From: Klebsormidium nitens
Taxonomy: Eukaryota > Plantae > Klebsormidiophyceae
Assembly (NCBI GenBank): GCA_000708835.1
Contig: DF237032.1
Span: 1-64,000, forward strand
Direction of reading: 5' to 3'
Length of the DNA: 64,000 bases
In this document: positions 2,940 through 24,560 of the stretch, piece by piece
Position numbering within the stretch: the first letter of the stretch is position 1
Layout of the letters: every line of letters starts with the position of its first letter
Notes under the pieces: generated by a model
Seen by the model: only the letters and a program-made list of their open reading frames with translations
The model's database searches: none
What the model was told of the DNA's origin: nothing
Made by a program: the position numbers and the translations under genes

Positions 2940-5900
2940 CTACGCCTTCTGCTGGACCTGCCTGTGGAGGGTGCTGAGCCAGTCGACGTAGCTAACCCCC
3001 CCGACCCCCCTGTCCTCGACCAGGCCCTGGTAGAAGAGCGCCTCACGCGGCTCCCCTTGGCGCACCAGCACCAGCGGCGGGTACACGCCCGCGCCCTCGC
3101 GCTGGTGCGCAATCAGCGCCAGCAGCTGCTGCGACGTTGCATTCTTCTGGGGCGTCAGCACAACCTGCAAGAAACACCACGGCGCTTAGCGCTGCCTGAC
3201 GTCTATGTAGCCCAAAAGTAAAGGGAGCATGCGAGACTCGTTTGGAGCCATCACAATCTCTTACGCAGTCACCTGGTAAGGTCGCGGGTGACCCACCTGG
3301 GTGAGGTCGGGCAGGCCTGCGGCTTCCGCCCCCAGGATGCTGGCGGCGTACTCGGGCGGCAGCTGCTTGCCCAGCCACAGCACCATGCGCAGGCCGTCGT
3401 CTAGCAGGAACGCGCCGCGCACGTCCAGCCGCTCCGCGCTCAGCGGCAGCGCCGCCGGCACAACCACCGTACCGTCAGGGCCGGGCCGCCCCACCTGTAC
3501 ACAAAGGGACAGACCGTCATTTGGGCGCAGACAACGACAGTTCCTCCCCCTTCGTGTTAGAGAAGGCCTCATTGCTCGGCACTTACGTGCACTCCCACTG
3601 GGCAGGCTGCCACCACGTGAGGGGGGCGCACCCAGCGGGCTGGGGCAGCGATGGTGCAGGACGCCGGGCAATGAGGTTTGAGGGGCGTGCGTTGCGGTAT
3701 TCGGGCCGTACCTCGGGGGGGAGGCCGTCCACACGGAAGAGCGTGGGGTAGAGCAGCTTGAGCAGGCGCGGCACGCTTAGCGTCATCAGCTCGTACCCCA
3801 CGAAGCTGCGCTCGTCGGGCGTCACCTGCGCACACCACGTTGCACGTCAGATGAAGGAGGCCAGCAGCCTAGCAACCGGCAAGCATGCCATGGAGTAAGC
3901 AGGCAAGTGGTCCCAGCAGCAAGGGGCAGCCGCGCTCGTCGGGCGCTCACCTCCTGGAAGCCGCCCCGCAGCGGCGTGGCCTTGGTGACGGCCAGCGCGT
4001 AGAGCGGCAGCAGGCGCAGCGTGTCCGGGTAGATGAGCCGCCCGCCCGCGGTGCGCAGCTGCGCGGCGGGGTACAGCTGGCGGTACTCGCGCAGCGCCTG
4101 GATGGCCTTGGCCGTCACCACGCCGCGCGCCGCCTCGAGGCGGTCCGACAGCGACTTCTCGACGGCCAGCTTGGCCAGCACGTTGACGCACGCGGCCGCA
4201 TCGGCGGCCTTGTACATGTCGCCCAGGTCGGCCACGAGCGGCGCGGCGAGCGTGTGCACGCGGATGCGGCGCTCGCCCGAGGAACTGGTATAGAGCAGCG
4301 CGGACTGGAAGTAGACCGTCTGCTGCGGGACGAGCTGCTCCTCGTGGCTGATCTGGATGGCGAACGCCTTGTCCTCGTCCACGCACGGCAGCGCCAGCAG
4401 GTCCGTGGAGCGGATGAAGAAGTGCCCGTGGAAGCTGCTGATCTTGAGCCCCTTGCCGCACCGGATGCGCATCACCGCCTCCCACGCCGTCTCGCGCTCC
4501 AGGTCGTGCTGCAGGTCCCACGCAAAGCGCGCTCCGTCCGCGGCGGGGGTGAAGCCGGGGTAGAAGTACACCTGCCCGCCCGTGTAGCGCGGCAGAGTGC
4601 CTGCACACCCACCGCGCATGTCAGTCGTGGACAACAGAGGCAGAGGGGGACAGCAGCGGGCCAAACCAGGGCACCTTCCCCGGCAGTTACTGGAGAAGAA
4701 ACCCATAGGACTTGACCGTTCAAAATCGCGAACGACAGGCAGAAAATCGTATCGGCAGCTGTTTTCATGGGTTCGGCGAGCGTCCACTGCAGACAGCGCT
4801 TACAAGACAAGCGGTGAATGTGTAATCGCATACTGCGTTTCAGGCCCCTTAACGGAGGCCAGCCCTGCCTTGCCTCCCCTGCCAGGGATGGCGCATGCTC
4901 ACCTAGGGACGCCACGTCGATGTACGAGTTGGCGAAGAGGTAGGCATTGACCCCGATCTGCACGCGGCTGAACTCGGCGGCCGTCTTCTTGTAGAAGGCC
5001 TCCTCTGCGATGCGCAGTGTGTGCTCGCGGTCGCTGCCGTAGAGGCGCGGGTCGTCCCCGCGCGTGCGCAGGCGGCCCGGCCCCAGGCTGGGCAGGCCGG
5101 CCTGGAAGAGCAGCACCTTGCCGCCCAGGCGCGCCAGCAGCAGGTGCGCCGCGCTCAGCGCAGGGCCCAGCGCGGCCTCCAGGTTGGTGCTGCCCGCAAA
5201 GAAGGCGGGCAGGCTGGTCAGCAGCGCATCCACCACAGCGCGGCTCTCGCTCAGGTTGACCAGCAGCTCGTCGGGGAGCGGCAAAAAGGGGTCCTCCAGG
5301 TCGGTGACCACGAGCATCTGGGGCGCCGCCAGGCTGGCCTTCAGGTTGTAGAAGTGCAGCGTGCTGTCGAAGGTGACGAAGCCGATGCGCGTGCGCGAGT
5401 CTCCGGGCAGCCGGTCCAGGCTGGCGCGCACCGCACCGCACAGCAGCTGAACAGGCGGACAGGTCGAGGTCAGAGCGGCGCAGGAGGACAGAGCAGAGCA
5501 CGCGGAATCTGCACTAGTCGCAAAAGGTATAGCGAAGGGAGAGCGACGGAAGACGAGCGAGCAAGAAAGCAAACGATGGTGCACTCCATGTTGAATAAAC
5601 CAAGATCATGCTGGCCGCATGCTCCAAGACGAACTCACCGGGAGCATGCCGGAGGCGACGGCGTTGGCGGAGACGTCGATGACAAAGAGGTAGGCGGGCG
5701 GCATGGGCGGGCGCACCATGTACTCCTGCGGCGCCACAAACTCCACACTGCCGCGCGCCAGCTCCGGCCGCTGGTCCGCGTCCTGGCGCCGCCCATTGGC
5801 GTCCAGCGCGCAAAAGTACTCCACCGGCACTGCGCACCACCCCGCAATTACGTAGGCTGTCAGCGTACAATAAAATGCTTGGGATATAGGGGCTGCTGAA

Positions 5901-7594
5901 AAGGGAGTATGAGGCCACCAGTGCAGAAAGACTGGGCCTGATCGGGCCTCCCATTAACGTATCCGCACCCACCTTCGTTAAGCAGGGCGCAGACATTGCA
6001 GCGCCAGCGGCGACCCCCATCGGTGAAGGTTACATACGGGTTGACGTATGTGCGGCAGCGCCGGCAGCGCACAATGCCTGAAGGGCCAAAGTTGACCACG
6101 GGGACCTCCTCCTGAAAAAGAAGCGACACAACACTATGCGTCAACTCCCTTCAATCCAAGAGCACTGCCAAGCGGTCAGAAAGAACCCAGGCAACCAAAC
6201 CTGTGCCGTACTATCATCCCATCGATGTCAACAAGGCGCAGGTGCGCTGGCTAGACGACAGTTCTGTGGCACGCTCACCCCTTTCTGGGGTCGCGCGAGG
6301 GGCTGCAGCACGGCCCCCAGCGGGAGGTGCCAGCGGGCGCGCAGGCTGCCGGAGCTGGGGATGGCGTTGCAGGTCAACCGGAAGAAGGTGGGCGGGCTGT
6401 TGGCTGCCGCTGTGAACGGCGGCACGTCGGCAACCGCCAATGGCCGCGGCAGCGCCTCAGCATTCGCGACTGTGTCCGTGGCCCCCCCGGGCCCCATTTG
6501 CGGCGTGAGGGTCAGGCTCTCAAAGTCCTCCACCAGCGCCTGCTGCTGGCCGTAGCCGTACGGGCCAGGCGCAGGGGGGTACCCCGCTGTGGCCGCCTGC
6601 TGCTGAAGGAGCCGCTGGCGCGGGGACTGCGGCGGGGGCTGGCTGGGCACGCCAGGCTCGCCATACGCAGGAGGTGGGCCGGCAAAGGGGACCGCAGCGG
6701 GGCCAGGGCCGGGCCCGCCAGCAGCAGGGCCACCCACCCCGAAAGAAGGTGGGGGCCGCACAGCACCCAGCGGAGCGGGGGGCGGCGGGCCCATCTGGGT
6801 GACAGGGGGGGCATTGTAGCCGGTGTAAGGGCTGGGGGCAGGGCGGACGGGGGCGGCTCCGTAGGTTGGGCCGGGAGTGGGGTAGGCGTTGTACGCAGGA
6901 GGCCTCACAGAAGGACCGGGAGGCTGCCCGTAAGGAGGTGGCGGCCCGGAAGGCTGGCTGTAGGGTGGGGGCGGGCCTGGAGGTCGGGCCATGGCAGGGG
7001 GCTGGAAAAAGGGAGTAGGGGGGCCCTGACTACTGGGGCCAGCCGGCATGGCAGGGGGGCCCACAGGGGGGGCACCGCCAGCAAAGGGAGGGGGGCCTGG
7101 CACCCCAGGAGCAGCATAGCGGACGGGACCAGGCACACCAGGAGGGGGGGCGCCAGGGGCAGGCGCAGAGGGGCGGAATGACGGGACGGGGCCAGGGGGG
7201 CCAGGCGGAGGGGCATTAGGCTGCGGCTGGGGGGGCTGGCCTGCACGTGCACACACAGACAGTCAGGACAGGCAGCCAGACAATCAGAAGAACAAACAAA
7301 ACCACCAGCCAAAGCAATGCAAGAGAGGGAAAGATGAATTGAATGCTGCTCCAGAGGTGCTAGTCTTTAAGCAACGGGAGTTAACCAGCACAGGTACGGG
7401 TGTGCAGCTTTGATTGCTCGATAGCACGAAGGACCAGTGCATGCATCCATGGTCCAGATAGCAACCTGCAACAGCATGCATAGGTGCGCAGATGCGCACA
7501 ATGCTCATGTGCCGCTGAGGCCATCCCCACCTGGTTGCTGTTGCTGCTGCCCCGGCTGCAAGTACGGCGGGGGAGGCCCAGGGGGGCGCTGCAT
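2940..7594 (-). CDS. SEC24A: COPII coat subunit Sec24, plant SEC24A-like; 9 exons
   Basis: Exons 7531-7594, 6279-7240, 5973-6111, 5639-5829, 4903-5446, 3951-4600, 3712-3825, 3297-3494, 2940-3164, all GT-AG with compatible phases. Pro/Gly-rich N-terminus; zinc finger [12 protein letters not shown]...RCNVC; vWA trunk AYLFVIDVS; beta-barrel ERRIRVHT; helical and gelsolin (GAFLLDDG) domains; ends LHRQVQQKA*. Confidence 0.93.
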
Positions 7595-8505
7595 TTTGGG
7601 GGCAGTAGGAAACGGCAGCAGTCCACCAGCACCAAAAGTTGCGGTGCAGATCTTTCCCTCAAACAAGGATCAGACCAAAGCGGCACACGACCTTTGTCTG
7701 CAACAACTTCCACCACGTGTTCAGCGCAAATCGAGGTTATCCTCAAGTGGTCGGGCAGCTACGCAAATCTCAGCAGTTGCTTTTAGGGTCGAAAGCCTAG
7801 CCTATGCAAATCGGACCACGATTTTGTGCACCGAATGGAATCCTGCCTGTACAGCACCTTGTATGCTGCACAGGAATGGCGAAAGCTCCGGATCAACTCA
7901 ACCAACAGAGGTGGTGATGACCGTTGTCGTCAGGCCGAGCAAGTGAGCACCTCAACTTCAGCTGCAAAAAGGCTCCGGCCACGATGCTAAGCAAACGAGG
8001 GCGGCTCACGGTCCATTTCCATGACCGCCATCCTCTCTGCAGGAGTGCTGGCATAACGTTTAATTCTTCCAATGATCAACTTCAAGTTCAAGTTCAAGGC
8101 TGGCAAGCTGGAAGAATTCTTATTTTTGGCACAACTGGTCCGTTACAAAATCGCCAAATTGTGGTGGCATACGTCCTCAAAAGACCTGATTCAAGATTTT
8201 GTTGTAGGATGATTTAGCCTTACATCAGATCGATCGGCGACAGGTCAGATGCAAATCAAATTGCCATACTGATAGCTTACATAGGGCGTCGTAATCAGGC
8301 AGCCTACTTGAAACGCCCCTCCGACTCGGGATCGGAGTCTGAGTAGCGACGACGGTAGCGTATCTTGTTCTGCCACTGCAAATTGCAGCTTGCTCAGTTG
8401 CTGACAGTGATTGCTGCGCAATCGGGGTGGCAAACGGTTGTGCGGGCCACCGTCCGCTGCCTGAGCTCTCAGGTGAGGCGCAGATTGAGCATTTGAGATC
8501 TTGCG

Positions 8506-11500
8506 ATGGCGTCTCCTTACCCGGGCGGCTTCGCTTCCCCCCCTGGCTCCCAGGGCCCTCCATTTTCTGCCCGCCCCGCCCAACCTGGCGCCCCCGTCCA
8601 ACAGAGCCCACCAATTGGCAGCTCTTTTGCCGGCGCCTCTCCTATGGCCGGTCCTTTCCAGCCCCCCGGCACGGCAGGTCCGCCGTTTGGCACCCCCCCG
8701 CAGCCTGCCGCTCCCTACCCCGGGGCTGCTCCCAGCCCAGCTGGATCAGCGCAGGGCCAGTACGGAGCCTCCCCGCAGAGGCCCTCAGGGCCGTATCCGA
8801 TGGGTCCCTCTGCGCCGGCTGGTGATGCCTACGCAGGGAGGCCTGCGGGGCCACCGGGTGGTGCGCGGCCGTATGGACCCCCCCAAGCACGGCCAGGGTT
8901 TGCAGGGCCGCAGGGAGGCCCTTCTGGCGCCCCAGGTTATGGAGGACCGCCACAATTTGGCGGGCAGATGCAGCCTGGGGGCGGCCAATTCGGGCAGGCG
9001 CCGCCCCAGCCAGGGATGTTTCGTCCACCAGGGGGCCCAGGGATGAGCGCGGGCCCTCCCGCTGCGCAGCCGGGAGGCTTCCCCGGGGCCCGCCCCGCTG
9101 CAGGGCCCCCTCCCCAGCAGGCAGGACCTCCTTCGGCGGCGCCAGGGTATGGGCCGCGGCCAGCCGGCCCGTCTCCCCCTCCTCCGCAGATGGCGGGGCA
9201 GCAGCAGAGCGGGTACGGCGGCCCCGGCAGCCAGCTGGGTGGGGCTTTCCAGAACCTGCAGATTGGCACAGGCTCCCCGTCCGCCACCGCTCAGCACCCA
9301 TTTGGGACCGGCGGCGCGGCAGCGGCAGGAGCGCAGCGCAGGGTATACCCGCAGGCATACACCACCGGGGGGCAAGGGCAGCCGCCAGCCAATTATGTGA
9401 GGGGGCAACGCTGGCTGTCTGCCTGCCACTGTCACCGGACTCCAGTCACCATGGCTCTCAGCCAGGGAGCACCATCTCCAGCAGTTGATCGTGATGCAAC
9501 CTTGCTGCGTGCTTCTGATTGCCGCCTTCCACCTGTTCAGTCTGACAAAACCCTAGGTGGAGACTGCTTGTTGAACGTTCTGCATATGCAACTCAATGCT
9601 TCTTTGGAAAGTAAGCCTGGGTATCACTGTGCTTTTGAGCTGATCAGGAATACTCAGGAATTCGTTCCGTTTGGAATCGAGGCTCCATTGAATGGAGCTA
9701 TATATATTGTGTGGCGAAATTGAGAAGCTGCCATCAGGGTTACACGGCTCTGAATGCTTGTTTTTGACCGCTCCCCACTGAGGCCTTTGTTGGTTCACTG
9801 CAAGTATAGTTAGCGTGGCCGGCCACACAGGGGGTGGAGAAAGTGGAGACGGTATTCATCCCTGCGCGGAAGATACTTGTGAAGATGTAGAGCAACGTCA
9901 GTAAGGTTTCAAGGGGCTTTTATTGCTGATTGGCCTTGAATGCTGCATTGGAAAGACAATTTACGATGGTTCTCTAGCCCCTGTCTTCTGGTCCAGTGCC
10001 CTGCGTTGACTGGTTGCTCTCGGCCACTTCTCCCAGGCTCCCCCCCCCGGCATGCCCAGCATGACCCCCCCCGCCCCCGCACGCATGGCCGCCCAGCCGC
10101 GCACCTCCCCCACCGGCCCCAGCCATATCGACCCCACACAGATCCCGCGCCCGCAGCCCGCGGAGACCATTGCGGTGTTTGAGACCCGCGTGGCGGGCGC
10201 CGCGAACCTGCCCCCTCCCGCCACGGGCGCGTACCTGGTGCGTGACACGGGCAACTGCAGCCCGCGCGTGATGCGCGCCACGCTCAACCAGGTGCCCGCC
10301 GCGGAGGACCTGCTCAAGACGGCGGGCATGCCGCTGGCGCTGCTCGTGCAGCCGCTGGCGCTGGGCGACCCGCGCGAGGAGGCGGTGCCGCTGGTGGACT
10401 GCGGGGAGGCGGGGCCGGTGCGGTGCAGCCGCTGCAAGGCATACATCAACCCGTTCATGCAGTTCGTGGACCAGGGCCGCAGCTTCACCTGCAACTTCTG
10501 CAACATGAAGAATGAGACGCCGCGCGACTACGTCATGAACCTCGGCCCAGACGGCAGGTCAGCCTGCATCCACATCACAGTGGGCTGCCAGTGTGTGCTC
10601 TGAACACGAGTGCCGTTTCTGTGCTGGGGGTCATCTCTTGGAGACCCTGGATTGTCCTTCGGATGCCTCCGCTTGACAGCATGTCAGTCAAGCATGCCCT
10701 CAAAGTTTCGAGTCGGTTTGCTGGCTAGTTTGACCACAACAAGAGTCGCATTCAGACTTTCGCTTACTCCTTGCACGCTCTGCATCTGACTGGTGCCTTC
10801 CTTCTTATACAGGCTTTACTCTGTGGAAACGCCAGATTGTATTGAGTCGTTCAACGATTAGTCAGTGCTTACTTGCCACTAAAAACTCTCGCTGACGACC
10901 TTCTTATACTGCGCACAGACGACGTGACGTGCTGGAGCGGCCGGAGCTGTCCCGCGGGAGCGTGGAGTTCGTTGCAACGAAGGAGTACATGGTGCGCCCG
11001 CCCATGCCGCACACGCTGCTCTTCCTCGTCGACGTCTCCCTCAACGCCGTCACAACAGGGTCAACCGCGGCGTGCTGCAGCGCCATTGCGCGCGCGCTGG
11101 CCGACCTGCCGGACGCGGACACTACGCGCGTGGGCGTGGCCACGTACGACTCGAGCATCCACTTCTACAACATCAACCCCAGCCTGGCGCAGCCGCAGAT
11201 GCTCATCGTGCCGGACGTTAAGGACCCGTACGCGCCCCTGCCGGCCGGGCTGGCGGTGCCGCTGCCCGCAGCGCGTCAGCACCTGGGCACGCTGCTGGAG
11301 GCGCTGCCGTCCATGTTCCAGAGCAACCGCGTCGGGGACTCCGCTATGGGCTCCGCCGTGAAGGCCGCCATGCTCGCGCTCAAGGCCACGGGGGGCAAGA
11401 TCCTCGTCTTCCAAGCAGGTCAGCGCGCCAACGCAGTGCGGTCTTCGCTCTTCAGGAGCCGAGATTTCATGGGGCATTGACTAAACCAGCCATGGTCCCT

Positions 11501-13851
11501 AGTGACTCACGGCCTCGGTTCCGGTTTCGATGGAGGGCATCTAACTTTCTGTCGGATCCTTTCCAAGCTGGCAACCGACTCGTTTTGAACACTTTCTTCA
11601 AACGAGATTCCTCTGTGAAAGGAGGATCTCCGTATACCCTGCGACGGGCTTCTCAAGCTTGCTTGCCGTCTGCTCCCCTGCTGAGCTCATCTCGTTCTGT
11701 TGCGTTGCTCCTGTGCGCAGTGTTGCCGTCGCTGGGCATCGCCTCGCTGAGCGCGCGCGAGGCGGAGGGCCGCACGGGCGGCGCGGTGGGCGAGAAGGAG
11801 GTGAACAAGCTGCTGGCGCCTGCGGACAAGGCCTTGGAGAAGCTGGCCACCGAGGCCGCCGAGTTCCAGGTGTCGCTCGACGTCTTTGTCACTGCGCAGG
11901 GCTACTGCGACGTGGCCAGCCTGGCGGTGCTGCCGCGGCTCACGGGGGGCAGCCTGTACACGTACCAGCCGTTCAACGCGGCCGCGGACAGCGCCAAGCT
12001 CTACAACGACCTGCGCTGGAACCTCACGCGCCCGCAGGGGCTGGAGGCGGTCATGCGCGTGCGCTGCTCACAGGTCAGCGCCCGAAAGTCTACCCCCTCA
12101 GCAGTGTGAGAACAGTTTGAGAGGATCCGAGGAGCAACATGCAACTTGCCTAAGTTCAAGCATGAAGGTCAGGATGTTGGCATGTATGGACTCGTAGATT
12201 CCTGGTGATCTCAACCGTTGCCTTGATTGGGTTCCGATCCTCTTGGAAGTGGGAGCAAGGTTTGAGTGGGTGCTGACGCGGGTGTTGTGCGGTGCTGTGG
12301 CGGTGTGCAGGGGCTGCAGGTGGCGGACTACTCGGGGTCGTTCTGCCGGCGCATCCCCACCGACGTGGACCTGCCCGCGGTAGACTGCGACAAGGCGCTC
12401 CTGGTGACGCTGCGGCACGAGGAGAAGCTGCCCGAGACGGCCGAGGCCGCCTTCCAGTGCGCGCTGCTCTACACCACCGTCACCGGCCAGCGCCGCATCC
12501 GCGTGCACACGCTCGCGCTGCCCGTCACGGCCGCGCTCGGGAACCTCTTCCGCGGGGCCGACCTGGACGCGCACTTCGCCTACTTCCTCAAAACAGGTGC
12601 GGACCCCGTTCTCATGGTTGCCCTGTGCCTTTTTGGAAAGAAACAATTCTGGCGATACTCAGACCAGGTCGCGGTACGGCTGCTCAACGCTTCCGACCGC
12701 CCTTCTCGTGGCGGCCTTGCTGATTTCTTTCTGTCGAGCTGCTGTCAGTCAGTCATTCAATTTGGTTCCGGGGCTCGTCCATATCCCCGTTGCTGCATGC
12801 CAGTAATCATGCTAAAGGGTTTAACCCAGAGACGATGACATTTCATCTCGAAGGGGCCAACATGTTGAGGACACTACGAAACGATCCATTGAGTTCCTTT
12901 CTGGGCATGAAGCTGTAGCGCCCCAGGTCGATCTGAAGGGGTGCTGGTTGTGGTGCAGCGGCGGCGGACGTGCCGCGCGTGCCGGTGCCCCAGATTCGCG
13001 ACTCGATCACGGCGCAGACGGTGTCCATCCTGCACGCATACCGCAAGCACTGCGCCACGAGCAGCAGCGCGGGCCAGCTCATCCTGCCCGAGGCGCTCAA
13101 GCTGCTGCCGCTCTACATGCTCGCGCTCGCCAAGAGCCCCGGCCTGCGCACTGACATGCGCCCCGACGACCGCGCCGCGTGGCTCGCCAAGGTCGCCGCC
13201 CTGCCCGTGCCCCTCGCCGTGCCGCTCGTGTACCCGCGCATGTTCGCCGTGCACGAGCTGCCGTCCGACGGCGCTGCCGCGGCCGCGGGCGGCGCGGGGT
13301 TGCCGGCGGTGGTGGGGCTGAGCAGCGAGAAGTTGGAGGCGGAGGGCGTATACCTGCTGGAGAACGGCGAGGACGCGTTCCTGTGGGCGGGCAAGGCCGC
13401 GGCGCCGGACGTGCTGGCCGCGCTGTTTGGCGTGCGCAGCCTGGACCAGGTGGCGCCGGGGCAGCTGCAGCTGGCGCGCCTCGACTCGCCGCTCTCGCAG
13501 CGCCTCAACGACCTGGTCGACGAGATCCGGCGGCAGCGCTGCTCCTACCTGCGCCTGCGCATCCTCAAACGGGGGGACCCCCTGGGTGAGCCACCCGCCC
13601 CACAGCTCGCCTCAGCAATGACGTGCGGCGCAGCACAAATGGGATTGTTGTCGTGTAAGGCTGCTTGCATGAAGTTTGAAGTGCTCGTGCGTGTTGTGTG
13701 CGTTGGTGCGATCTGACGTGGCGGTGTTTGGCGGTGTGGTGCAGAGCCGGCCTTCTTCCAGTGCCTGGTCGAGGACAAGGCGCAGTACGGGCAGTCCTAC
13801 GTGGAGTACCTGATTCACATACACCGGCAAATACAAAACAAGTTCAACTGA
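8506..13851 (+). CDS. SEC24: COPII coat subunit Sec24, plant SEC24B/C (CEF)-like; 7 exons
   Basis: Exons 8506-9396, 10037-10557, 10919-11418, 11721-12073, 12311-12596, 12959-13585, 13745-13851. Motifs NCSPRVMRAT, RCSRCKAYINPF...[45 protein letters not shown]; ends IHRQIQNKFN*. Confidence 0.93.
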
Positions 13852-14049
13852 ATGCACCAAAGTTACACCGCAAATAAGAGCCAGTAAAATCCGTTGAGTT
13901 AGATATACCAGACGTGAGTTGTGCAATGCTCTTTCGAACTGACTGTTCTTAGCTTCCTTACGCGGTTCACATCCAAGCCATGACCGATGCTGCCAGAGGA
14001 TAGGCTGGCTTAGTTAGCCAGTCTGGGTCCGAGTAAATACGACTTACTT

Positions 14050-14700
14050 TCAAGTTTGGTATGACAGAGAAAGGCGGCTTGTCGTTTCCGGGTTCGATAC
14101 GTCCTTGCCGGCCACATCGTACGTCCAGTTGTCATGGTCCAACCTTGCGAATGAGTGGACATGCAGGCTCGTAAATATGCAACTAATATCGATCGGGTCT
14201 ATCACAGTGAAGTTGGGCGGCTCAGCAAGTCGGGTATCCTTAGTACTAATTCGTATGCATGCTCCACTAATATTGCATATCAAGCTAAGTTGCATGACAT
14301 GCCAGCATGAGGTGATCATACATACTAACGTGCGTGCATGATATATCATTGGACACTCAATGTGCGCATGGTCACTGTCCATATGCACGTGTCCGACATG
14401 GTATTCGATTTATCTAGAGCTAGAACGTCCACACTTGCCATGGCACATATATGCACCGGCTATAGTCAAACGTATCATGAATATAGATTCGAACAAATAT
14501 AGTATGCCTGATCGTCTATATTAGCTATTCATGCAGTAGAAGCTATAAGTATAGATGTGCAATAACTTAGTGCCGCGCCGCCGCACATGCTCAATATGAT
14601 TGAATACATAGACGGTTCCTTTATAATCATAACTTTGCCTACCATATGTGCAAGATATGTGGCCGAACACCCGGCGTACACATGATGACCTAACAAGCAA
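14050..14700. other. Palindromic-tetramer-rich intergenic tract (between convergent SEC24 and RPL5)
   Basis: Dense CATG/TGCA/ATAT/GATC/CTAG, e.g. 14281-14420. No recognisable coding similarity. Confidence 0.55.
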
Positions 14701-15180
14701 CTGGGTCCGACCGGACCGCGAGTCCAAGTTGGCGGCAGCCTCAAAGCAGTGTATGGCCTGCACGCACTAGCCCCTGCTGTGCCGCGGGAGAAGCTGACCA
14801 GGGTCCAACGGACTTGAGCGCTGCGCACGCAGCTTATCATGATTAAAGAAGAGTCCGATCTCATTAACGAGTCCACATAATCGACGCCAAGGCCAGCCGC
14901 AGAGACCGTCTTCCATGAAGGGATGAAGGGGGTCACGCCTGGCGGCAAGGGGAACATCGAAGGCGCTGGTGGTTGACGTAAGATGCAGCCAAATAAGTCA
15001 ACGCAGGCTGCCCAGATGTTGTTCTCGTTCACTTTACAATACCTCATTCGTATATGTTTTACGAACTCTGACAAGGGCAGTGGAATCCAACAATACGATT
15101 GGACTGATGTCGGGAAACCCATTCCCAACTGCCAATGCGCGTCTTAGCACCCCACTCGATGGCCCTGCCGCAGCCTGTGT

Positions 15181-16947
15181 CTACTTGCCCTTTGTTCCTT
15201 GAAAGGGCATGCCGAGCGCGGTGAGCAGCTGCAGGCCCTCGTCGTTGTCGCGCGCGGAAGTGACAAAGGAGACGTCCATGCCGCGCACCTTTTGCACCTG
15301 GTCGTAGTCAATCTCAGGGAACATGAGCTGCTCCTGCAGGCCCAGGTGGAAGTTGCCCTTCCCGTCAAAGCTGCTGGGCTTGAGCCCCTGGAAATCGCGA
15401 ATACGCGGCAGCGCCAGGTTGATCAACCGGTCCAAAAACGCAAACATCGCCTCCCCCCGCAGCGTCACGCACACCCCCACCGGCACATCCTTGCGGATCT
15501 GGAACCCGGCAATGGCCTTCTTGGACCGTGTGACAACCGCCTTCTGGCCCGCAATAGTGGACAGGTCCTGCAGCGTGGACGCCAGCGACTTGGCGTCATC
15601 ACTGGCCTCCCCAAGGCCGCAGTTGATTACGATCTTCTGCAGCCGCGGCACGCGGTTCAGATTGGAGAAGCCCTCGGGGCCGTGTAGCCGCTGCAGCACT
15701 TTCTCTGTGTACAACTTCTTCAGCCGCGTGCTCGTCGCAGCCTCCGCCTCCGCCTCTGCCTCTGCGACGGCCGCCTGCGCAAGGACAGGCCAGGATTGCA
15801 AGGTGGGGGCAATGCGTGATTGCGTCTGCAGTAGCCAGCAATCGAGCTGAGGGGCCCGCAACACAACCACCGGGCCCCCAAGCTGCCGACGCCTGACCGT
15901 GATGGTAAAGTTCCTACGGCTCCTGAAAACGGGCTAGGAAAGGGGTCTCCCCCAACATTTGCACGTAGCTTCAACGCTGGGCCGGGCAGTGACGATTTGA
16001 AACGGCAGCCCAACCGTAGCATGGCTACGCTCGACCAGACTCCCGACTCATCAAGAGTCGCGCAGCTTTCCTACGCGCGTTCAAACTTCTGTGCTGTGGG
16101 TACTCGATTGCTGGCGTCGCTCACCTGAACCCTGAAGGAGCCCAACCGCCGGGCTTCCAGCTGTGAGCTTTGGGGCAGAGCAGGGCCTGCAACAGAATTA
16201 CAACCCGCCGGCACGCATCAGCAAGACAACCGTAATGGCAAAACGACTCATCAGGGGCAAACAAGGTGCATACTGGACGCTCAGATGCATAGGAGACAAC
16301 TTCTCCCAACGTGAGTAGCCCTGCAGGGGGGTGCCCACAATTTGTCTCGCTACATGTGCTGGCATATTAGGGTTGCCCAATGCGGAGGCTGTAAGCATTG
16401 GACAGCCAGGCTGTGCTACTCGCAGGCTCCGGGAATTGCAATGAACCTGTGCCCACATTCGCTGCCAGCTTGACAGACGGAGGGTCAAAGGAACTGGCCC
16501 GAGTAGGTGTCAGCGGCCCTACTCCCATCACCTCATCGACCTTGCACTCTGGAGAAGCAAACCCAGTCCAATGCACCGAGTGGCTCTTCAAGGAATGGCA
16601 AGACACCGAGCGCAAGCATAAAATCCCCAGCTGCCTCGCCTGCAGCAGGCTCCCTGTGGCAACGGTGTGCTTCTTCAAATCCTAGTTCGAAGTACTGTAC
16701 ATGATCATAACGCCATATAGAATGCCAAGAGAGACAACTGTTTGACCCTCTGCCAAGAGCAAGGGCAAAGAGAAATGTGTGTCTCACCTGAGATGGCTGA
16801 AGAGGAGGATCGAAGAGTCAGTGTGCTCAGGAAGCTTGACCGCACTGCACAGTTTCCTGGCGCTCCTGCTGTCGCTTCTCTGGGGCCTGTCACCTTTTGA
16901 AGCAGGCCGTAGCTCATGCCCCGGACACACTCCATGGCATGAGCCAT
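15181..16947 (-). CDS. RPL5: Nuclear-encoded plastid 50S ribosomal protein L5 (uL5c) with transit peptide; 3 exons
   Basis: Exons 16788-16947 (phase 1), 16125-16186 and 15181-15774. Mature part is cyanobacterial/plastid-type L5: VPRLQKIVINCGLGEA, GQKAVVTRSKKAIAGFQIR, FLDRLINLALPRIRDFQG, FDGKGNFHLG, FPEIDYD, RGMDV. Confidence 0.92.
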
Positions 16948-18133
16948 GCTGCCACACCTACCAACAATGCAAGCCCTCGAAAGAGGCCAAGAGCGCCAAC
17001 TCCTCCACCCCTTGCCTATGCCAATGCACGTACCTACGACGCTACGTCGCCTCTGATCAGGATATGCAAGCCTTGTGGCGACGGCCTCGGCTCATGCAAG
17101 GAACAAGTGGTAATGGTTCCAATTCCCTCATCTCATGGCGTAAGTTTCATTTGACGAGACTCTTTACTTGGCAAAAGAACCAATTATTACTCGGTACAGT
17201 TGGATAAAACTTTTATACTTGTTGACGAGGACTACCCGGCTCAGTCCGCGTGATATTCCGCGGAATTCCGAAACCGGAAGCAGGACGGAAACCCGGAAGA
17301 GGAAACGCTCAATGCAAGGATTCGGTATGCTCAAGCATGGAAGCTTCGCAGATTTTCAAGCTCTGTGATGATACATTGCACGTTCACGGCGTCATGCTGA
17401 CGGGTCGCCGAAACAATGCTTTGTATGATACCATAAGCGCTGAGGAACGGTGCATCATTGCACTAAGCCCGCCTGCCCTCTTTTAGCGTGGTGTACTCTC
17501 TCTCTCTACCCGATAAGGTAGGTTCGCCGCAGCTCGCACAACGTGCTACATAGTGCCATGCATGGTTCTTGAAATTCACAGATGCGTTCACATCAGTTCA
17601 AGTTTATGCGACAGGTCTGCTTAAGAGCATTCATACGAGGATGTATGATAAATCGCGTGATGCCATGGGCGGCCTCAATTGAATTACCAAACATTCGGGT
17701 CGAACGGTCAGAATGGATTTGGCTCGCAAGCTAACAATCAGATCACTAGCATTAATGAAAACCTGGCAAGCATGCCAGTGAGAAACGCAAGCATGCGGAT
17801 AACACCTTTATACATCAGGTGCCGATGAGTGGATGCATCTCTGCTTCAAGGATCATCTGAAAGGGATTATGTGACTTGAAAATGCAACCGAGCAGAATGT
17901 CTACTTGTACTGCCAGGCACCAACACCCCCACTGACATCGTCCATTGTACACGCGAGCTGCCCATTGCCCTGGCGGAGGGATTATGTTGTGGCTGAAGCT
18001 ACTTTGAAGACCATGTCCCCAATTGAAGTGAAGTAGCCAGAAACGACCCACTTGGAACCCCTTGCGCCCAACTTGGGGCTGCCGTCCAGGTAAAATAGCG
18101 AAGGTACAATTGCGTGCTAACCCTGGACGTCCC

Positions 18134-21100
18134 TTACAAAAGGAAGTCTTGAATTTTGTTCCTGGAGCAGGATCGAGAGGAGAGTGTCAATGCTTCATGT
18201 ATGTGCAACTCGATGAAAGTTGAAGCTTGACGAGATTGATGAATCCACCCTGAATCTTTTCAGCACTTAAGCCCGGAACTCAATAAGAGTGGCGCTTGTG
18301 AACATGGCACTCGAAAAGTCGTACTTAGCAACTAGAATACATTGGCGGTTCGGGGGGATCGACCTGAGTCCCCAGCCCCGACTTCGATGGTTGTTTTCCT
18401 CACCTCATGCGGTCTCTCCTTGCCTCCTCCGCCGCTCTCCCCCCTGCTCGGTCGAGCCACGGCAAGTCGTGCAGCCACGCCGGGTTGGCCGTTCCCCCCG
18501 TTCCTCCGAGCACCTGCTCCCGACAGCTGCGACAGCACGCCACGCCGCCCGGCCTCGCCTCCGACTGCGGGCCTGGCGGCACAACCCCTCGTCCCGCGCC
18601 ACTGCTGCCTCGGGAGTCTCCGTTGGAGGCCTCGTGTCCTACGGACGCAACTTCTACCCCTCGCCCGTCGCTCTCTCCGCCCGTGCTCCCTACCTCCGCC
18701 CCATTCTCCCGCAGCTGGTCCCCTGCCGGCGCCGCCGCTCCCCTCCGCTCCTCGGCCTGCTCTGCCCGCGCTTGTTCCGCAGTGTCGCGCCCCTCGTTCC
18801 CACCATCTCCCGCATCAGCCCCTAACCGCTGGCCTGGCTCGCTCTCGGGCCCCCTGGCTCCTCTTTCTCCCGCCCCCCCGTCCTGCACTTCTGCACTGGT
18901 CAGGGGTGCACGGCACAAGGCGCACAGGTTGACCCCATCCGCTGGCTCGGCCGCTGCCTCGGTGCCTTGAGCGGGCTGCAGGCGTGCACGGTGGCCGGGG
19001 GGCAGGGCAGGGAAGGCGTTGAACGGGAAGGGCTGCAGCTTGCCCGCGGTGCGCAGAATGGTGAGGGTGCGCCCGGGGAGGTCGTCCTGGGAGCACACAT
19101 CAAGCAGGCCCACGTCAGCAACGTTTCCGGGAGCAGCCGTCCCAGTTGGTGAGCAGTGCCGGCTTACTGCCTTAGGCACAGTACAACACTGCACGGCACG
19201 GAACAGTGTGCACAGGGCTACGAGAGAGGGCAGGGGGTGCGCAAAAATGCTACGCACAGGGAGTCGGCAGTGGGCCAGAATACGCGCACGGGAGCTGACC
19301 TCAATGAGGGTGAGGAAGTCTTGGGTGAGGCGGTTGAGGGACGGCCGCGCCGTAGGCCCTGCGTCCAGGCTGGGCACAAACGTAGTGGGCCACCTGCAGC
19401 CAAGGGCGCCTACATTAGCGCGGGGACGAGACGAGACTCGTCGGCAGTGGGTCAACCCGTGATATATGTGCCTGGCACGCTCCCTTTCTCTCATCTCATC
19501 GAGATGGGCGCTGCCCCTCCAACAGACGGAAGTCGCACAGCTCGCCGATGCTGCCACGTGGCACTTACCGGTTGAGCGTGCACAGCGTGGCCAGCTCCTT
19601 GATGACGCAGTCGCGGAGGGGGGCGATGACGGGCACCGTGCGGCGGCGGTCCACGGCCTGCAGGTCCGCGGGCAGGGAGAAGCCACGCCCCTGCGAGGTA
19701 AGGCGAAGGATGCGCAAGTGAGCTGACGCCGCCCTTCGGGAACCTGGGCTGCAAACAGCTGGCCTGCTTGAACGGCCCCGGTGCATATTCGTCCCATACG
19801 GGGCGCCAGCTTACAGGCCCAATGAACAACTTCAATACATACACTTCGCTCCTCCGGCTCAAGATACAGCGCCACATTAGCCTTGCTTGCTTCCACATTT
19901 CGGCGCCTCCCAGCAGGTCACGTCACTGTGTGGGCTGCTCGTGCTGCCCCCCTGCTTGCGCGTCCTCACCTTGACCGTCCCAGTCAGCACTTCCGCCGCC
20001 AGCCGGCTCGCACACACCCCTGTGGCAATCTTCGTGTATCCATGCTCCACCGCCACCTGCCACACCCACGCAAAAACTTCGTCAGGCAAGTGAGAAGGCA
20101 AACATATGGAACGGCGTCATCTCTTGATATAAGAAGCAGATGGTCGACTACTCTGTACAAGGTGGGAAACTGCTCCCCATGCCCAGAAGGACAGCTGTCC
20201 CAGTGGCCCGCATTCCTCACCTGCTGCAGCGCCTCTGTGCGCAGCATCTCCACCAGGTCCTCTTGCGCCGTTGCATCGGCTACGCGCGCCACCATTGCCC
20301 GCAGCCGCTCCCACGCCCCTGCCAATCCATCCGTATGGGGGACGCTGTAACCCGGCCTCCCTTCCTCCAACTGATCCCCTGAATCGTTTCGTACCACCCC
20401 CTTTGTCGCACTGTCCTGGCTGCCCCGTGGCATCGTGCCTTCTGGAGCAGCCTGATGTGCCTGGCTCCTCCCTTTCAAGAACAGCTCCTCCAGCCTGACA
20501 ACGTGCACGCGACAGCCCCTCTTCTCAAAAGGGGCTGCCAGCTTGCGTATCCGCTCAACGTCTGCATCCCCATCGTAGTGTGGGCGGGACAGGACGGCCG
20601 CCTCGCTGACAAAGACAAGCCCCAGACGGAAGACGGTCTTGCCGCGGTCGGCGGCAGCGGCCAGGGGGGTAGTGGCGTGCGACTGCAGCTCACTAAGAAA
20701 GTGCAGCAACACCCTGCATAGTAAAGCGCACAGGCTGGGGGCTGGGCGGGGGGAATTGGCAGAGGGGATTCGCCCGGGGGCAAGCTTCTCTGTGAGCTGG
20801 CATTGGCTACAGACACCAACTATGGCAAACAAAAAAGGGCCGCTCTAGGCCTTGTAGGCACGCACAAAAGTTCTGAGAGACATGGCGGTCATGGAGCCGG
20901 GGTGAAGGAAGTTCTCTCATTGAGAGGCTCAAGGCCTTGCAAACAGTTTGAATACAATTGGTTCGCAAGCTCAGGCAAACATTCAGCTGGGCGCCCTTAC
21001 GTGGACGAGTGCCCCCCTGAGAAGGCAAGCAGGACGGCATCGTGCGCCTGGACGAGCGCGTGCTTGTTGATCGCCGTCTTGACCTTGTACAGCAGGCTGG

Positions 21101-21617
21101 CCCGCAGGCACGCCCCACAGTACGGCTCGCGCTGATTGGCAATAACCTCAGCAGGGGCTGCACGGCACTTGACGCACAGTGGCGCTGCCGGGGCGCCCTC
21201 CCTGGCAGCGGTCTCGCCACTACCACCACCACCGCCATCGGACGTGTCTCCAGTGACCCTCACAGATGCCCCGTTTGCTGACATCCCCCTTGCTTCTTCG
21301 CCGTGCCGGTCGCATGCCGAGGAGCAAGATGCTGGCGTGCCACCACATAAACCGTTGACCCCAGGCGCCTGTGCCATTCCCCTGTCCTCATGCTGCTTGT
21401 TTGAGCCTGCACAGTCACCTGAGCTACACCCCATGCCATCACAACGTGGCCGTGCACTATGGGGGCCATTGCACAAGCTATGCCCATTTTCCGGTCTGAA
21501 AGGACGAGTTGAAACCTGGGAAAAGTTTTCATCCTCTCCATTCTGAGCGGCATCGTCGGTGGCATTGCTCTCAAACCCTAATTCCTCCATGTCGCTGACA
21601 TCGCAGCCTCCGCTCAT
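18134..21617 (-). CDS. CTU2: Cytoplasmic tRNA 2-thiolation protein 2; 7 exons
   Basis: Exons 21001-21617, 20221-20713, 19970-20056, 19569-19690, 19300-19393, 18404-19086, 18134-18161. Motifs CVKC, LLAFSGGHSS, GYTKIATGVCASRLA, GRGFSLPAD, PLRDCVIKEL, TILRTAGKL, CALC, CCRSC; ends KIQDFLL*. Confidence 0.88.
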
Positions 21618-22220
21618 GGCTGCTTCTACAGTTCTTCCTTCGAAGATGTTGTGGGTCCCAGAGCTGATGGCGGTGACCTGGTGGATACGCTGTGATGGCC
21701 CCTGCCAACCAGGGCCTGGCGTCTTTCACTGTCTAAGAAAGCAGCCAACACGCAAGCTGGAGCCAACGTGTAATTTGTAAATGTGGTTCCCCTGATACCC
21801 CTGAGTTCAAACGTTATCACAAATCCCTTCCTCAGTTGATCAAAATAGCTCAACCGACATGGAGATAAGCGGACAATGTATTGGGGCGCTATATTCACAG
21901 GACCTATGGCCAGTCGCCCGGTAAGGGTATATTCAGGCCTAATTGTAAATAATGCGGTTCTGATTGTGTGCCCGGCGGTTGCGAATCGAATCTGTATATT
22001 CTGCCGGACAATGGGGGCGCCAATTGTGTGATACATTGGCTCAACAATGCTGGACGGATTTACAGGTCGCCTTCAACCATTACCACGTCAAGAAAGACAG
22101 CTTGAAGTTGCAGAAGTTGCGTGGGCAGACGTTTCGTTGGGGCGCATTGGTAGGAATAATCTGTGTCGAAGGGGAAGAAGAACGGAGCAAGTATTCTGGG
22201 GAATCTCACGTGTTCTAGCA

Positions 22221-23792
22221 ATGGCGTCTGCAATGGGGTGTGTGCGGGGCATGAGCTTTGGGGTGCTGCAAAGAATGGCTTCTCCTATGAGGGCCCCTGT
22301 TATGAGCAGCGGGCTCCGCTCCAGCTTCCTTAGTGCCGCCCCTGTCCGCTCCTTCTCTTCTGCCATGGCAGGTGAGGCAATACATTGCTCGATCAGGGGG
22401 TGATAATCAGCGCTGGGCAGATTGTAATGTACACATTGACTGTGCTGTAATGCATCTTGCTCACGGAAGGCTGGTGTGATTGCGAGGGGTTGGAGTCACC
22501 ATTGCCAGCTTGAGGCCTATCATGAGCAGGCCACCTGCCAACTCCTTAAGTCTGGCAATGGAGGATGAGGGGCGCCTTTGTGATGTTTTACAGAGTGTCA
22601 GACAGCGGTATGACAGCGGCGTAGCAGCTTGTTGCAGGAAGAAATGTCTTCTCTCCAGCTTGAGTCTGTTAGAAAACATTCATGCTGATAGCAGAGCATC
22701 CATGCTGAGGTATCAGTCCCCATCTGCAATGTGATTTTGTGACTATCTGCAATATGACTTTGACTGACAGGCATTCGGTATGCTTCAGACTGGGTCTCCT
22801 GTCTCATATGGAAGTTTCCTCTGTCCGCTCTGCTAGACACGAGACCAGACTTTTGGAGTGTGCTTGATACGCCCGTGTCTTGAAAGCATTTCTTAAGAAG
22901 CGTGTTCTGGACCTGGTGCTTTGAGTCTTGGTGGCACACCCTGAAAAGTTGGGACTGTTTCACCTGACTGAAAGGACTCTTTCAACAGTGGATCACGGAT
23001 TTCCGCTCGGAACGGGTGTCTCAGATTCTGTTGGCTCAAGAAGCTCACGGCTGTGGTTCCAGCCGAAATGCTTGGCTGGCATTGAGGTACAGATGAGGCG
23101 ATCTTAAGAAGCCAGATTGGCCCAGCTTCTTCAAAGCCCCCAATCAATCACGCAAGTTTTACCGCGTGCGGTTTGCAACACATCATACTGCCGGTACATA
23201 AAGACAAACTCCACACTGCGCCGAAGGTTTTGTCTGAAGGTGCTAAAAACTCGGTTTTATGCTCCACCGGGATCAAGAGACTGGCTGCTAGCTTTGTGTG
23301 TGGAGCAGGTTTCACTGGTGCTAGAAATCTTGGATGAAGGGCTTGCCGACTATAACAGTTAATTGTGATAAAGTTTTTGAGGTGCAGACCAACTTTACTA
23401 TCGGAGTTGTTGCACCTCAGATTCCCCTGCAACCAGTACAATTTTCTGGTTGCGACGAACATACTCAACATAGTCGAGTCTATGAAGATGCTCCACCTGT
23501 TGCATAGCTCACCAACTTGTTTGATCGTCTTGCAGGCACCCCTCTCCAGCCCGGCTGCAGCCGGCTCCAATTCCTGGTGCGGCGGCCACTCACCATTGAG
23601 TGCAACAGAAAAGCTGGGCAGGGTGCCATGAAGCGGTCGCGCTCTCGCAAGTCTCGGGCGGCAGTTCACGGTTTCCGGGCACGGATGGCCACTCCTACCG
23701 GGAGGAGGGTCCTGCAGCGGCGTCGCGCGAGGGGTCGGGCGGACTTGTGCCCCGGCGGCAACCCGAAGGTGGCTGGAAAGAGGAAGTCGTAA
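22221..23792 (+). CDS. RPL34: Nuclear-encoded plastid 50S ribosomal protein L34 (bL34c) with transit peptide; 2 exons
   Basis: Exons 22221-22371 (phase 1) and 23536-23792. Mature part [42 protein letters not shown] matches plant plastid L34. Confidence 0.9.
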
Positions 23793-23999
23793 TTGAATAG
23801 CCGGAAGGTTAGGTAAGAAGGTACTGGACAATAGAAGAACCAAGGTCCTGCACGTGTTGTACGAAAGGCAAGAATTATTCGATTGGGGCACTTTGGATTG
23901 CCATTGATGGTTACTTGCTTGCACGAGCGTTCACTTACTTGTAAGTAACGCACCTTTGTCAAGGAAGATTTCCGTTTGTCTTTCACTTTATGCAGCATT

Positions 24000-24560
24000 G
24001 TATCAATATCTGATCAAGGTGGCCGCTTCTTTGAGCTCTTGCTTTGAAATGATCCTAGCTAGTACTTAGCTTGACCTGCACTTCAGCGCTGGCCGGGCTG
24101 CCGTGTTGCGATCGTTGGGATACATTTCGAAGCCACACGTAGACCACGACTGGCATGCATAAGCTGAACCATGACAAACACGCGATATTTTAAATCATAT
24201 ACATTCGACAGAGTACATATGGCATGAGGCCGCGGGGGTCAATGGAATTCCGCCCATGGTGCACTCGGCTGGCCCGGCGCGCTGGGCCCTTTAGTATAGA
24301 TCGATATCAGTACCAGGCCGGCCGCCGCTATATCGGACATGAGCGTACGTAGCTATATAGATCTAGCGCTAGCTACTAAAGTTGGCCGCACTGATGATCG
24401 CGCTGCCAGCACTAGCCATGTCAATCAATTAAATGATCGTAGACTAACGCACCTGGCAAGTGCACGATATTGAACGGGATGCTGCCGCCGAGCTAGGCGG
24501 CCGTGCGTGGCTGAATGCCCTAAGTTAACTCTGGTGTCAGTCAATGTTCATAGAGCGCAC
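24000..24560. other. Palindromic-tetramer-rich intergenic tract (between convergent RPL34 and coiled-coil gene)
   Basis: Hand count: 20 of 71 tetramers in 24301-24374 are self-complementary, against about 4.4 expected at 1/16. Confidence 0.7.

Follow-up and report, generated by a model that had tools for sequence, protein, structure and literature searches.

The genes RPL5 (uL5c) and RPL34 (bL34c), both encoding proteins of the 50S ribosomal subunit, begin with homologous first coding exons in the streptophyte alga Klebsormidium nitens, where they lie in inverted orientation on contig DF237032.1 (assembly GCA_000708835.1), within the first 64,000 nucleotides (nt) of that contig, referred to here as the window (Table 1). 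The homology of the two exons is confirmed, and we consider it probable that a nuclear plastid-type rpl5 was activated through a duplicate of exon 1 from the nearby RPL34 gene. By this account, a plastid-type rpl5 reading frame, still a single intron-free exon, would have entered K. nitens nuclear DNA and there gained a copy of RPL34 exon 1, which supplies the N-terminal part of the bL34 presequence and a phase-1 donor. In RPL5, splicing joins this first exon to a short linker exon of unrelated sequence, which in turn is joined to the L5 exon.

In an alignment with a single gap of 3 residues, the two leader peptides agree at 27 of 53 residues (composition-adjusted BLASTP, E 8e-15). They contain two blocks with 13/18 and 12/19 identical residues, and in a codon alignment 41 of 54 nt at the 5' end are identical, reproducing the counts in an initial reading of this DNA from its letters alone (the first-pass annotation). 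When each leader was compared by tblastn with all six frames of the window, the sole match was the other copy (E 1e-11), with the next standing at E 0.4. A repeat scan of positions 14500-24500 returned as its best inverted repeat the pair 16896-16947 / 22221-22272 (52 nt, 79% complementary), whose arms begin exactly at both ATGs and are 5273 nt apart. Both leader exons end in G/GTGAG in phase 1, and the mature parts of the proteins are unrelated, with Pfam L5 N and C domains in RPL5 versus L34 in RPL34. The earlier proposals of homologous leader exons, a common phase-1 donor, unrelated mature proteins, and inverted copies about 5.3 kb apart are thus all borne out. Significant similarity is restricted to the leader exon, and is absent from the next exon and from the upstream region. 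We also considered a longer duplicated block, in which the 62-nt exon 2 of RPL5 would derive from the beginning of RPL34 exon 2, and rejected it, there being no significant DNA or protein similarity between the two (p 0.13-0.9).

Structures of the RPL5 and RPL34 genes

The RPL5 coding sequence is split among three exons and specifies a protein of 271 residues. On the minus strand, its first exon runs from an ATG through 53 codons and one further base to a GTGAG donor. Logan contigs from four runs in four studies were aligned to positions 15050-21049, and both RPL5 splice joints (16185>16787 and 15773>16124, GT..AG on the minus strand) are present in all four; the RNA status of these runs is listed as a guess only, and the GT..AG joints show that they contain spliced transcripts. 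The contigs stop at about 17044-17070, which gives a 5' untranslated region of ~100-120 nt. RPL5 contig depth is ~110-1400 versus 15-100 for the adjacent CTU2-like gene (3 to 30 times across the four runs), although contig depth is a poor measure of expression.

The first-pass annotation had drawn RPL5 with two exons, which is wrong, as the 62-nt coding exon between them was overlooked. The phase-1 donor at 16788 is incompatible in frame with any acceptor of the exon at 15181-15774, and this mismatch arises because the middle exon intervenes; it was seen through a K. subtile transcript (P0001) with a 21-residue stretch between leader and L5 part, whose counterpart in the window is the 62-nt exon. 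Because the RNA contigs of four runs join the leader exon through this middle exon to the L5 body, the earlier concern that exon 1 might not be spliced to L5 falls away. The first ~90 residues of the RPL5 precursor constitute a presequence, and both L5 domains are complete and full length (PF00281, E 6e-22; PF00673, E 1e-37). The L5 body occupies one intron-free exon, separated by introns from the leader, which is predicted to direct plastid import.

Two side observations concern this gene. At the start of exon 3, a GAGGCA/GAGGCG repeat (15730-15774, minus strand) gives rise to an (Ala-Glu)n run immediately ahead of the L5 start; the run varies in length among K. nitens, K. subtile and a third Klebsormidium-type contig (L001, see below), is absent from a more distant alga (species X, see below), and, being acidic, is unusual inside a plastid presequence. 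Second, K. nitens RPL5 seems to be unannotated or mis-modelled in the public annotation, because no K. nitens RPL5 protein is found among database matches of 109-346 residues, the best of which is the K. subtile transcript (97%).

RPL34 exon 1 lies on the plus strand and consists of an ATG-initiated stretch of 50 residues plus one base, then GTGAG. Joining its two exons yields a 135-residue protein identical to K. nitens GAQ81523.1, and a K. subtile transcript (P0121) shows this structure too, with use of the same donor, so that the earlier model of this gene stands. The best named matches are the chloroplast L34 proteins of Sphagnum, Cryptomeria, and Dendrobium. GAQ81523.1 carries the name 'chloroplast ribosomal protein L35 precursor' and its Pfam domain is L34; judged by its domain, the public name L35 appears to be an annotation error. 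An exact look-up of the 54-residue L34 reading frame for further RPL34 loci found no record.

Table 1. Coordinates of RPL5, RPL34, and the gene between them in the window
Feature	Positions	Strand	Description
RPL5 (uL5c) exon 1, coding part	16788..16947	minus	53-residue leader plus first base of a split Gly codon; RNA joint; homology to 22221-22371
RPL5 intron 1	16187..16787	minus	601 nt, GT..AG, phase 1; RNA joint (CT..AC on the plus strand) in 4/4 runs
RPL5 exon 2	16125..16186	minus	62 nt, ~21 linker residues (GPALPQ...FRVQ); joints on both sides, also in K. subtile P0001
RPL5 intron 2	15775..16124	minus	350 nt, phase 0; joint 15773>16124, cut +1, in 4/4 runs
RPL5 exon 3, coding part and stop	15181..15774	minus	Ala/Glu-rich spacer, then whole plastid-type L5; Pfam PF00281, PF00673
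CTU2-like gene	17835..21617	minus	7 exons, about 700 residues; six RNA splice joints, spliced form one open frame
RPL34 (bL34c) exon 1	22221..22371	plus	50-residue leader plus first base of a split Gly codon; putative donor copy
RPL34 intron	22372..23535	plus	1164 nt, phase 1; same place as in Sphagnum and Dendrobium RPL34
RPL34 exon 2 and stop	23536..23792	plus	Remainder of presequence plus L34 domain; Pfam PF00468

Origin of rpl5 and source of the leader

The L5 body is of the cyanobacterial and plastid type and free of introns, in keeping with the earlier suggestion of a plastid-derived rpl5. Its best 120 matches are plastid uL5c and cyanobacterial L5 proteins at 60-67% identity, and its top relatives are the plastid rpl5 of streptophyte algae and cyanobacterial L5. 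In a phylogenetic tree, a nuclear L5 clade of Klebsormidium (100/100) joins the plastid rpl5 of Streptosarcina arenaria and Hormidiella parvula, weakly (60/78). Record names and lengths (short proteins without a leader) indicate that rpl5 is apparently still plastid-encoded in Chaetosphaeridium, Mesotaenium, and several Klebsormidiophyceae, and the K. nitens plastid genome has presumably lost it. We favor a lineage-specific plastid-to-nucleus transfer of rpl5. Land plants likewise have a nuclear uL5c (RPL5) with an N-terminal presequence, but the Klebsormidium transfer is probably independent, given the persistence of plastid rpl5 in other streptophyte algae and the weak grouping in the tree. 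Two database records (P0004 and P0111) deserve mention here: a Cymbomonas uL5c record has an internal duplication of ~30 residues, and an rpl5 entry under the name 'Streptosarcina sp. YL-2023a' falls in the tree with Koliella, a trebouxiophyte (96/90), not with Streptosarcina arenaria, and may be mislabelled or a contaminant.

The RPL5 leader is also found in K. subtile (P0001), in a Logan contig of SRR23617307 (L001, exon 1 at 1045-1203), and in a more distant alga, species X, which is represented by a genomic contig from a Joint Genome Institute (JGI) metagenome (L003) and by spliced transcripts (L004, L005, and L008), and which also provides an RPL34 locus (L002). The suggested check for a shared exon in relatives thus had a positive outcome, with the leader on RPL5 as well as RPL34 in species X (74% nt identity between the two over 183 nt), and three or four related algae have the shared exon in both genes. 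Some residues are gene-specific across species, with His3 and Lys18 in all RPL5 leaders and Arg18 and Phe13 in all RPL34 leaders. Because species X bears the exon in both genes and the gene-specific residues are common across species, the copying predates the K. nitens/species X split, and so is old; mature L5 is 89% identical between these two algae. The saturated synonymous sites of the K. nitens leader pair (pS 0.71) likewise speak for age. An L34 relative from an alga with a compact genome (L009), tried as a further comparison, has other neighbors and no such leader, and was uninformative.

These comparisons bear on whether RPL34 itself was the source. A third gene, or a wider family of leader exons on plastid-targeted genes, could have supplied both copies, in which case RPL34 would not be the direct donor and the adjacency of the two genes would be incidental; we regard this as unlikely, although it is the best of the alternatives. 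A profile built from five leaders and run against 1.84 billion representative proteins gave one true match, which is the species X RPL34 exon 1 read through into its intron (P0128), along with low-complexity noise. That library holds one protein per 50% identity cluster and did not return the known K. nitens and K. subtile carriers, and it is therefore blind to non-representative leaders. A word search with residues 1-51 of K. nitens RPL34 (P0133) covered proteins of 74-236 residues and found the RPL34 cluster only, missing the known positive P0128, and when metagenomes were scanned for the N-terminal pattern, a single locus was confirmed, namely an RPL5 transcript. The first-pass annotation had asked if the leader motif occurs on other proteins; these searches found it only on RPL34 and RPL5 orthologues, a weak result in view of their blind spots, and there is no sign of a leader family in Klebsormidium, its absence being unproven. 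Further points against a third source are that the window contains no other carrier, that the RPL34 exon boundary is ancestral, and that the copies are just 5.3 kb apart.

The direction of copying is indicated by the RPL34 intron. The RPL34 genes of both Sphagnum (L006) and Dendrobium (L010) have a Gly codon interrupted by the intron after its first base (...SSFTG and ...SSFSG, respectively), the remaining two bases coming from exon 2, and the split lies ~33 residues before a KRSRSRKS motif; in K. nitens RPL34 the intron interrupts this codon in the same phase (...SAMAG), 31 residues before KRSRSRKS. Because the introns of Sphagnum and Dendrobium share codon and phase with it, the RPL34 exon-1 boundary is older than the Klebsormidium lineage, and than the divergence of Klebsormidiophyceae from the land-plant line. 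The Klebsormidium RPL34 leaders also resemble those of Sphagnum and Dendrobium in composition-preserving shuffles (p 0.003-0.017, modest support given twelve tests); there was no signal against the Cryptomeria leader in the same kind of test. BLASTP of the K. nitens versus the Sphagnum RPL34 leader gives E 0.2 with composition adjustment, and the shuffle and intron-position tests were used instead. The C-terminal half of the species X RPL5 leader is nearer to the RPL34 leader of either species than to that of K. nitens RPL5, as expected if RPL5 began RPL34-like. The ancestral RPL34 boundary, the leader similarity, the species X pattern, and the intron-free plastid-type L5 together favor RPL34 as the probable donor and a lineage-specific rpl5 transfer, in support of the direction proposed earlier.

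The reverse, in which the leader originated with RPL5 and was afterwards substituted for exon 1 of RPL34, is very improbable on these grounds: similarity by itself is symmetric, and gene conversion, if real, works either way, but the place and phase of the RPL34 intron match those of Sphagnum and Dendrobium, the leader resembles those of embryophyte RPL34, and rpl5 is apparently plastid-encoded in other Klebsormidiophyceae. It is also established, to our knowledge, that bL34c is nuclear in all green plants. Least credible is a chance or convergent likeness of two Ser/Ala/Arg-rich transit peptides without common descent, since, even with a composition common to transit peptides and GTGAG donors being frequent, it is already refuted by the composition-adjusted BLASTP, the window-wide tblastn, the inverted-repeat scan, the nucleotide identity at the 5' ends, the identical exon end and phase, and the recurrence of the pairing in species X.

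Mode of copying and constraint on the leader

We propose that the RPL5 leader may have arisen by a local inverted duplication at the DNA level, a suggestion whose basis is the proximity of the copies and a weak similarity of the introns. The first-pass annotation had described similarity running into the intron, and this holds in part. In K. nitens itself it is not significant: after GTGAG, the RPL5 and RPL34 intron starts agree at 4/15 positions ungapped and at ~10/13 with one gap (p 0.34 gapped). The L001 RPL5 intron and the K. nitens RPL34 intron agree at 8/15 (p 0.02), and the species X RPL5 and RPL34 introns at 10/15 (+6 to +20, p 0.001). A copy made from DNA and including the intron start is therefore plausible on this similarity.

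A number of observations weigh against parts of the explanation that RPL34 exon 1 was copied locally to activate a transferred rpl5. For local duplication of DNA, they are the intron comparison in K. nitens just given, the lack of detectable similarity beyond ~20 nt into the introns, and the lack of any similarity upstream of the two ATGs, where a shared promoter or 5' untranslated region was sought by alignment and repeat scan. For the transfer, they are the 60/78 support for grouping the nuclear L5 with klebsormidiophycean plastid rpl5, and the text of a paper on klebsormidiophycean plastid genomes, which reports 8 + 22 gene losses and does not name rpl5 (PMC4877394). Concerning the uniqueness of the donor, there is the blindness of the representative library described above. 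Concerning synteny of the middle gene, contigs L001, L002, and L003 end 430-1020 nt upstream of the leader exons, before the position of any CTU2-like gene. As a separate matter, the species X contigs break in low-complexity sequence (L002 1-200, L003 1-120), with C-rich runs and ATGCAAA-type repeats, 430-515 nt upstream of the leaders.

The leader exons evolve under constraint (Table 2). The dN/dS ratio (nonsynonymous over synonymous substitution rates) is 0.10-0.25 in all pairs, and the start M-A-x-x-M-x-C-x-R-G-M does not vary among seven sequences drawn from the two genes; this constraint is unusually strong for a transit peptide.

Table 2. Divergence of the leader exons (pS, proportion of synonymous differences)
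Pair	Relation	pS	dS	dN	dN/dS
K. nitens RPL5 vs RPL34	paralogues	0.71 (saturated)	2.30	0.33	0.14
Species X RPL5 vs RPL34	paralogues	0.52	0.88	0.16	0.19
RPL34, K. nitens vs species X	orthologues	0.66	1.60	0.18	0.11
RPL5, K. nitens vs species X	orthologues	0.70	2.01	0.21	0.10

There is also a hint that gene conversion may have passed sequence between the RPL5 and RPL34 leader copies after the species split. Among sites informative for the quartet of RPL5 and RPL34 from K. nitens and species X, 7 group by gene, 11 by species, and 2 show the third pattern; these counts are small, and without exchange the species-grouping and third-pattern classes are expected to be about equal (binomial ~0.01). Intron starts are alike within species, with GTGAG.CA... 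in the K. nitens group and GTAAGCA.AGCTC.GG in species X, and orthologous introns agree at 3-4/15 positions. Silent divergence is lower between the species X paralogues (dS 0.88) than between orthologues (1.6-2.0), over only ~37 silent sites. The gene-grouping and species-grouping sites are interleaved without a clean conversion tract, which weighs against simple gene conversion. A stronger proposal, which we consider doubtful, is that purifying selection and repeated conversion keep the leaders alike for a specific role of the shared leader or its mRNA, such as coordinated import or translation of two 50S proteins, and that K. nitens has repeatedly brought transferred plastid genes into use with leaders borrowed from neighboring genes for plastid proteins. 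If true, a general rule would be suggested, by which plastid DNA becomes functional where it inserts next to such genes.

The locus and other cases of leader acquisition

The gene between the leader copies is head-to-head with RPL34 and sits upstream of RPL5 in the same orientation. The first-pass annotation had called it CTU2; a 7-exon minus-strand gene is indeed present, and its identity rests on a protein-atlas feature search, in which residues 140-205 of the first exon are placed next to cytoplasmic tRNA 2-thiolation protein 2 (score 0.93). Pfam and PDB sequence searches with its exons gave no match, and we call it CTU2-like from the atlas feature match alone. Its product begins CxxC ... 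SGGxSS. The start codons of the CTU2-like gene and RPL34 are separated by ~600 nt (21617-22221), and this intergenic region is a probable bidirectional promoter. The outer flanks are syntenic with the window, both for a Sec23/24-type gene beyond RPL5 and for genes downstream of RPL34; the Sec23/24-type gene (about 6270-14100), which is syntenic with L001 and L003, is convergent with RPL5. A more diverged second set of matches to the Sec23/24-type exons, at 4245-5772, suggests a nearby paralogue or partial duplicate of that gene.

Leader acquisition of this kind has precedents. The presequences of rice mitochondrial rps11 were reportedly copied from atp2 and coxVb, as Kadowaki et al. are said to have found in 1996, and a presequence exon linking cytochrome c1 and GapC is said to have been described by Long et al. 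in the same year. In both cases the presequence was reportedly likewise gained by duplicating or shuffling an exon of an unrelated nuclear gene, with similarity in the leader only, but they are mitochondrial and their donors are not neighbors of the recipients; we know of no report for either of continued sequence exchange between donor and copy. According to PMC4329224, plastid genes that reach the nucleus either take over a transit peptide already in use there or acquire a new one. The standard example is rpl32, which in Populus and Bruguiera is fused to the gene for Cu-Zn superoxide dismutase (Ueda et al. 2007; Cusack and Wolfe 2007, as summarized in PMC4329224). It resembles RPL5 in that a transferred plastid ribosomal protein gene came to use, in the nucleus, the transit peptide of a resident gene whose product belongs to the plastid, with leader and reading frame on separate exons. 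In that angiosperm case, as the source presents it, rpl32 was inserted into the host gene and the leader was shared by alternative splicing before duplication, whereas in Klebsormidium, a streptophyte alga, the donor is intact, the first exon alone was copied, and the genes are separate, inverted, and 5.3 kb apart. RPL5 and RPL34 differ from the known cases also in that both proteins belong to the same ribosomal subunit and in that an extra linker exon was recruited. A literature search found no report of RPL34-to-RPL5 leader copying. The mechanism is already known, and Klebsormidium RPL5 is a further, transcript-backed case of it.

The case also exposes a gap (RPL5) and an error (RPL34 as L35) in the public K. 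nitens annotation. Its wider interest lies in a classic question, namely how a gene that has escaped from an organelle gains the address label that returns its product. Most documented cases of leader gain are in flowering plants, with the donor mostly distant from the recipient or fused to it; here, donor, recipient, and copied exon are all intact, 5.3 kb apart, in several related algae, and are anchored by an intron common to land plants. Because these parts are intact and adjacent, the splicing of RPL5 is backed by RNA, and relatives and the land-plant intron provide an anchor, this is a good teaching case, and one that is tractable for studying the minimal import leader and the exchange of sequence between a donor and its copy.

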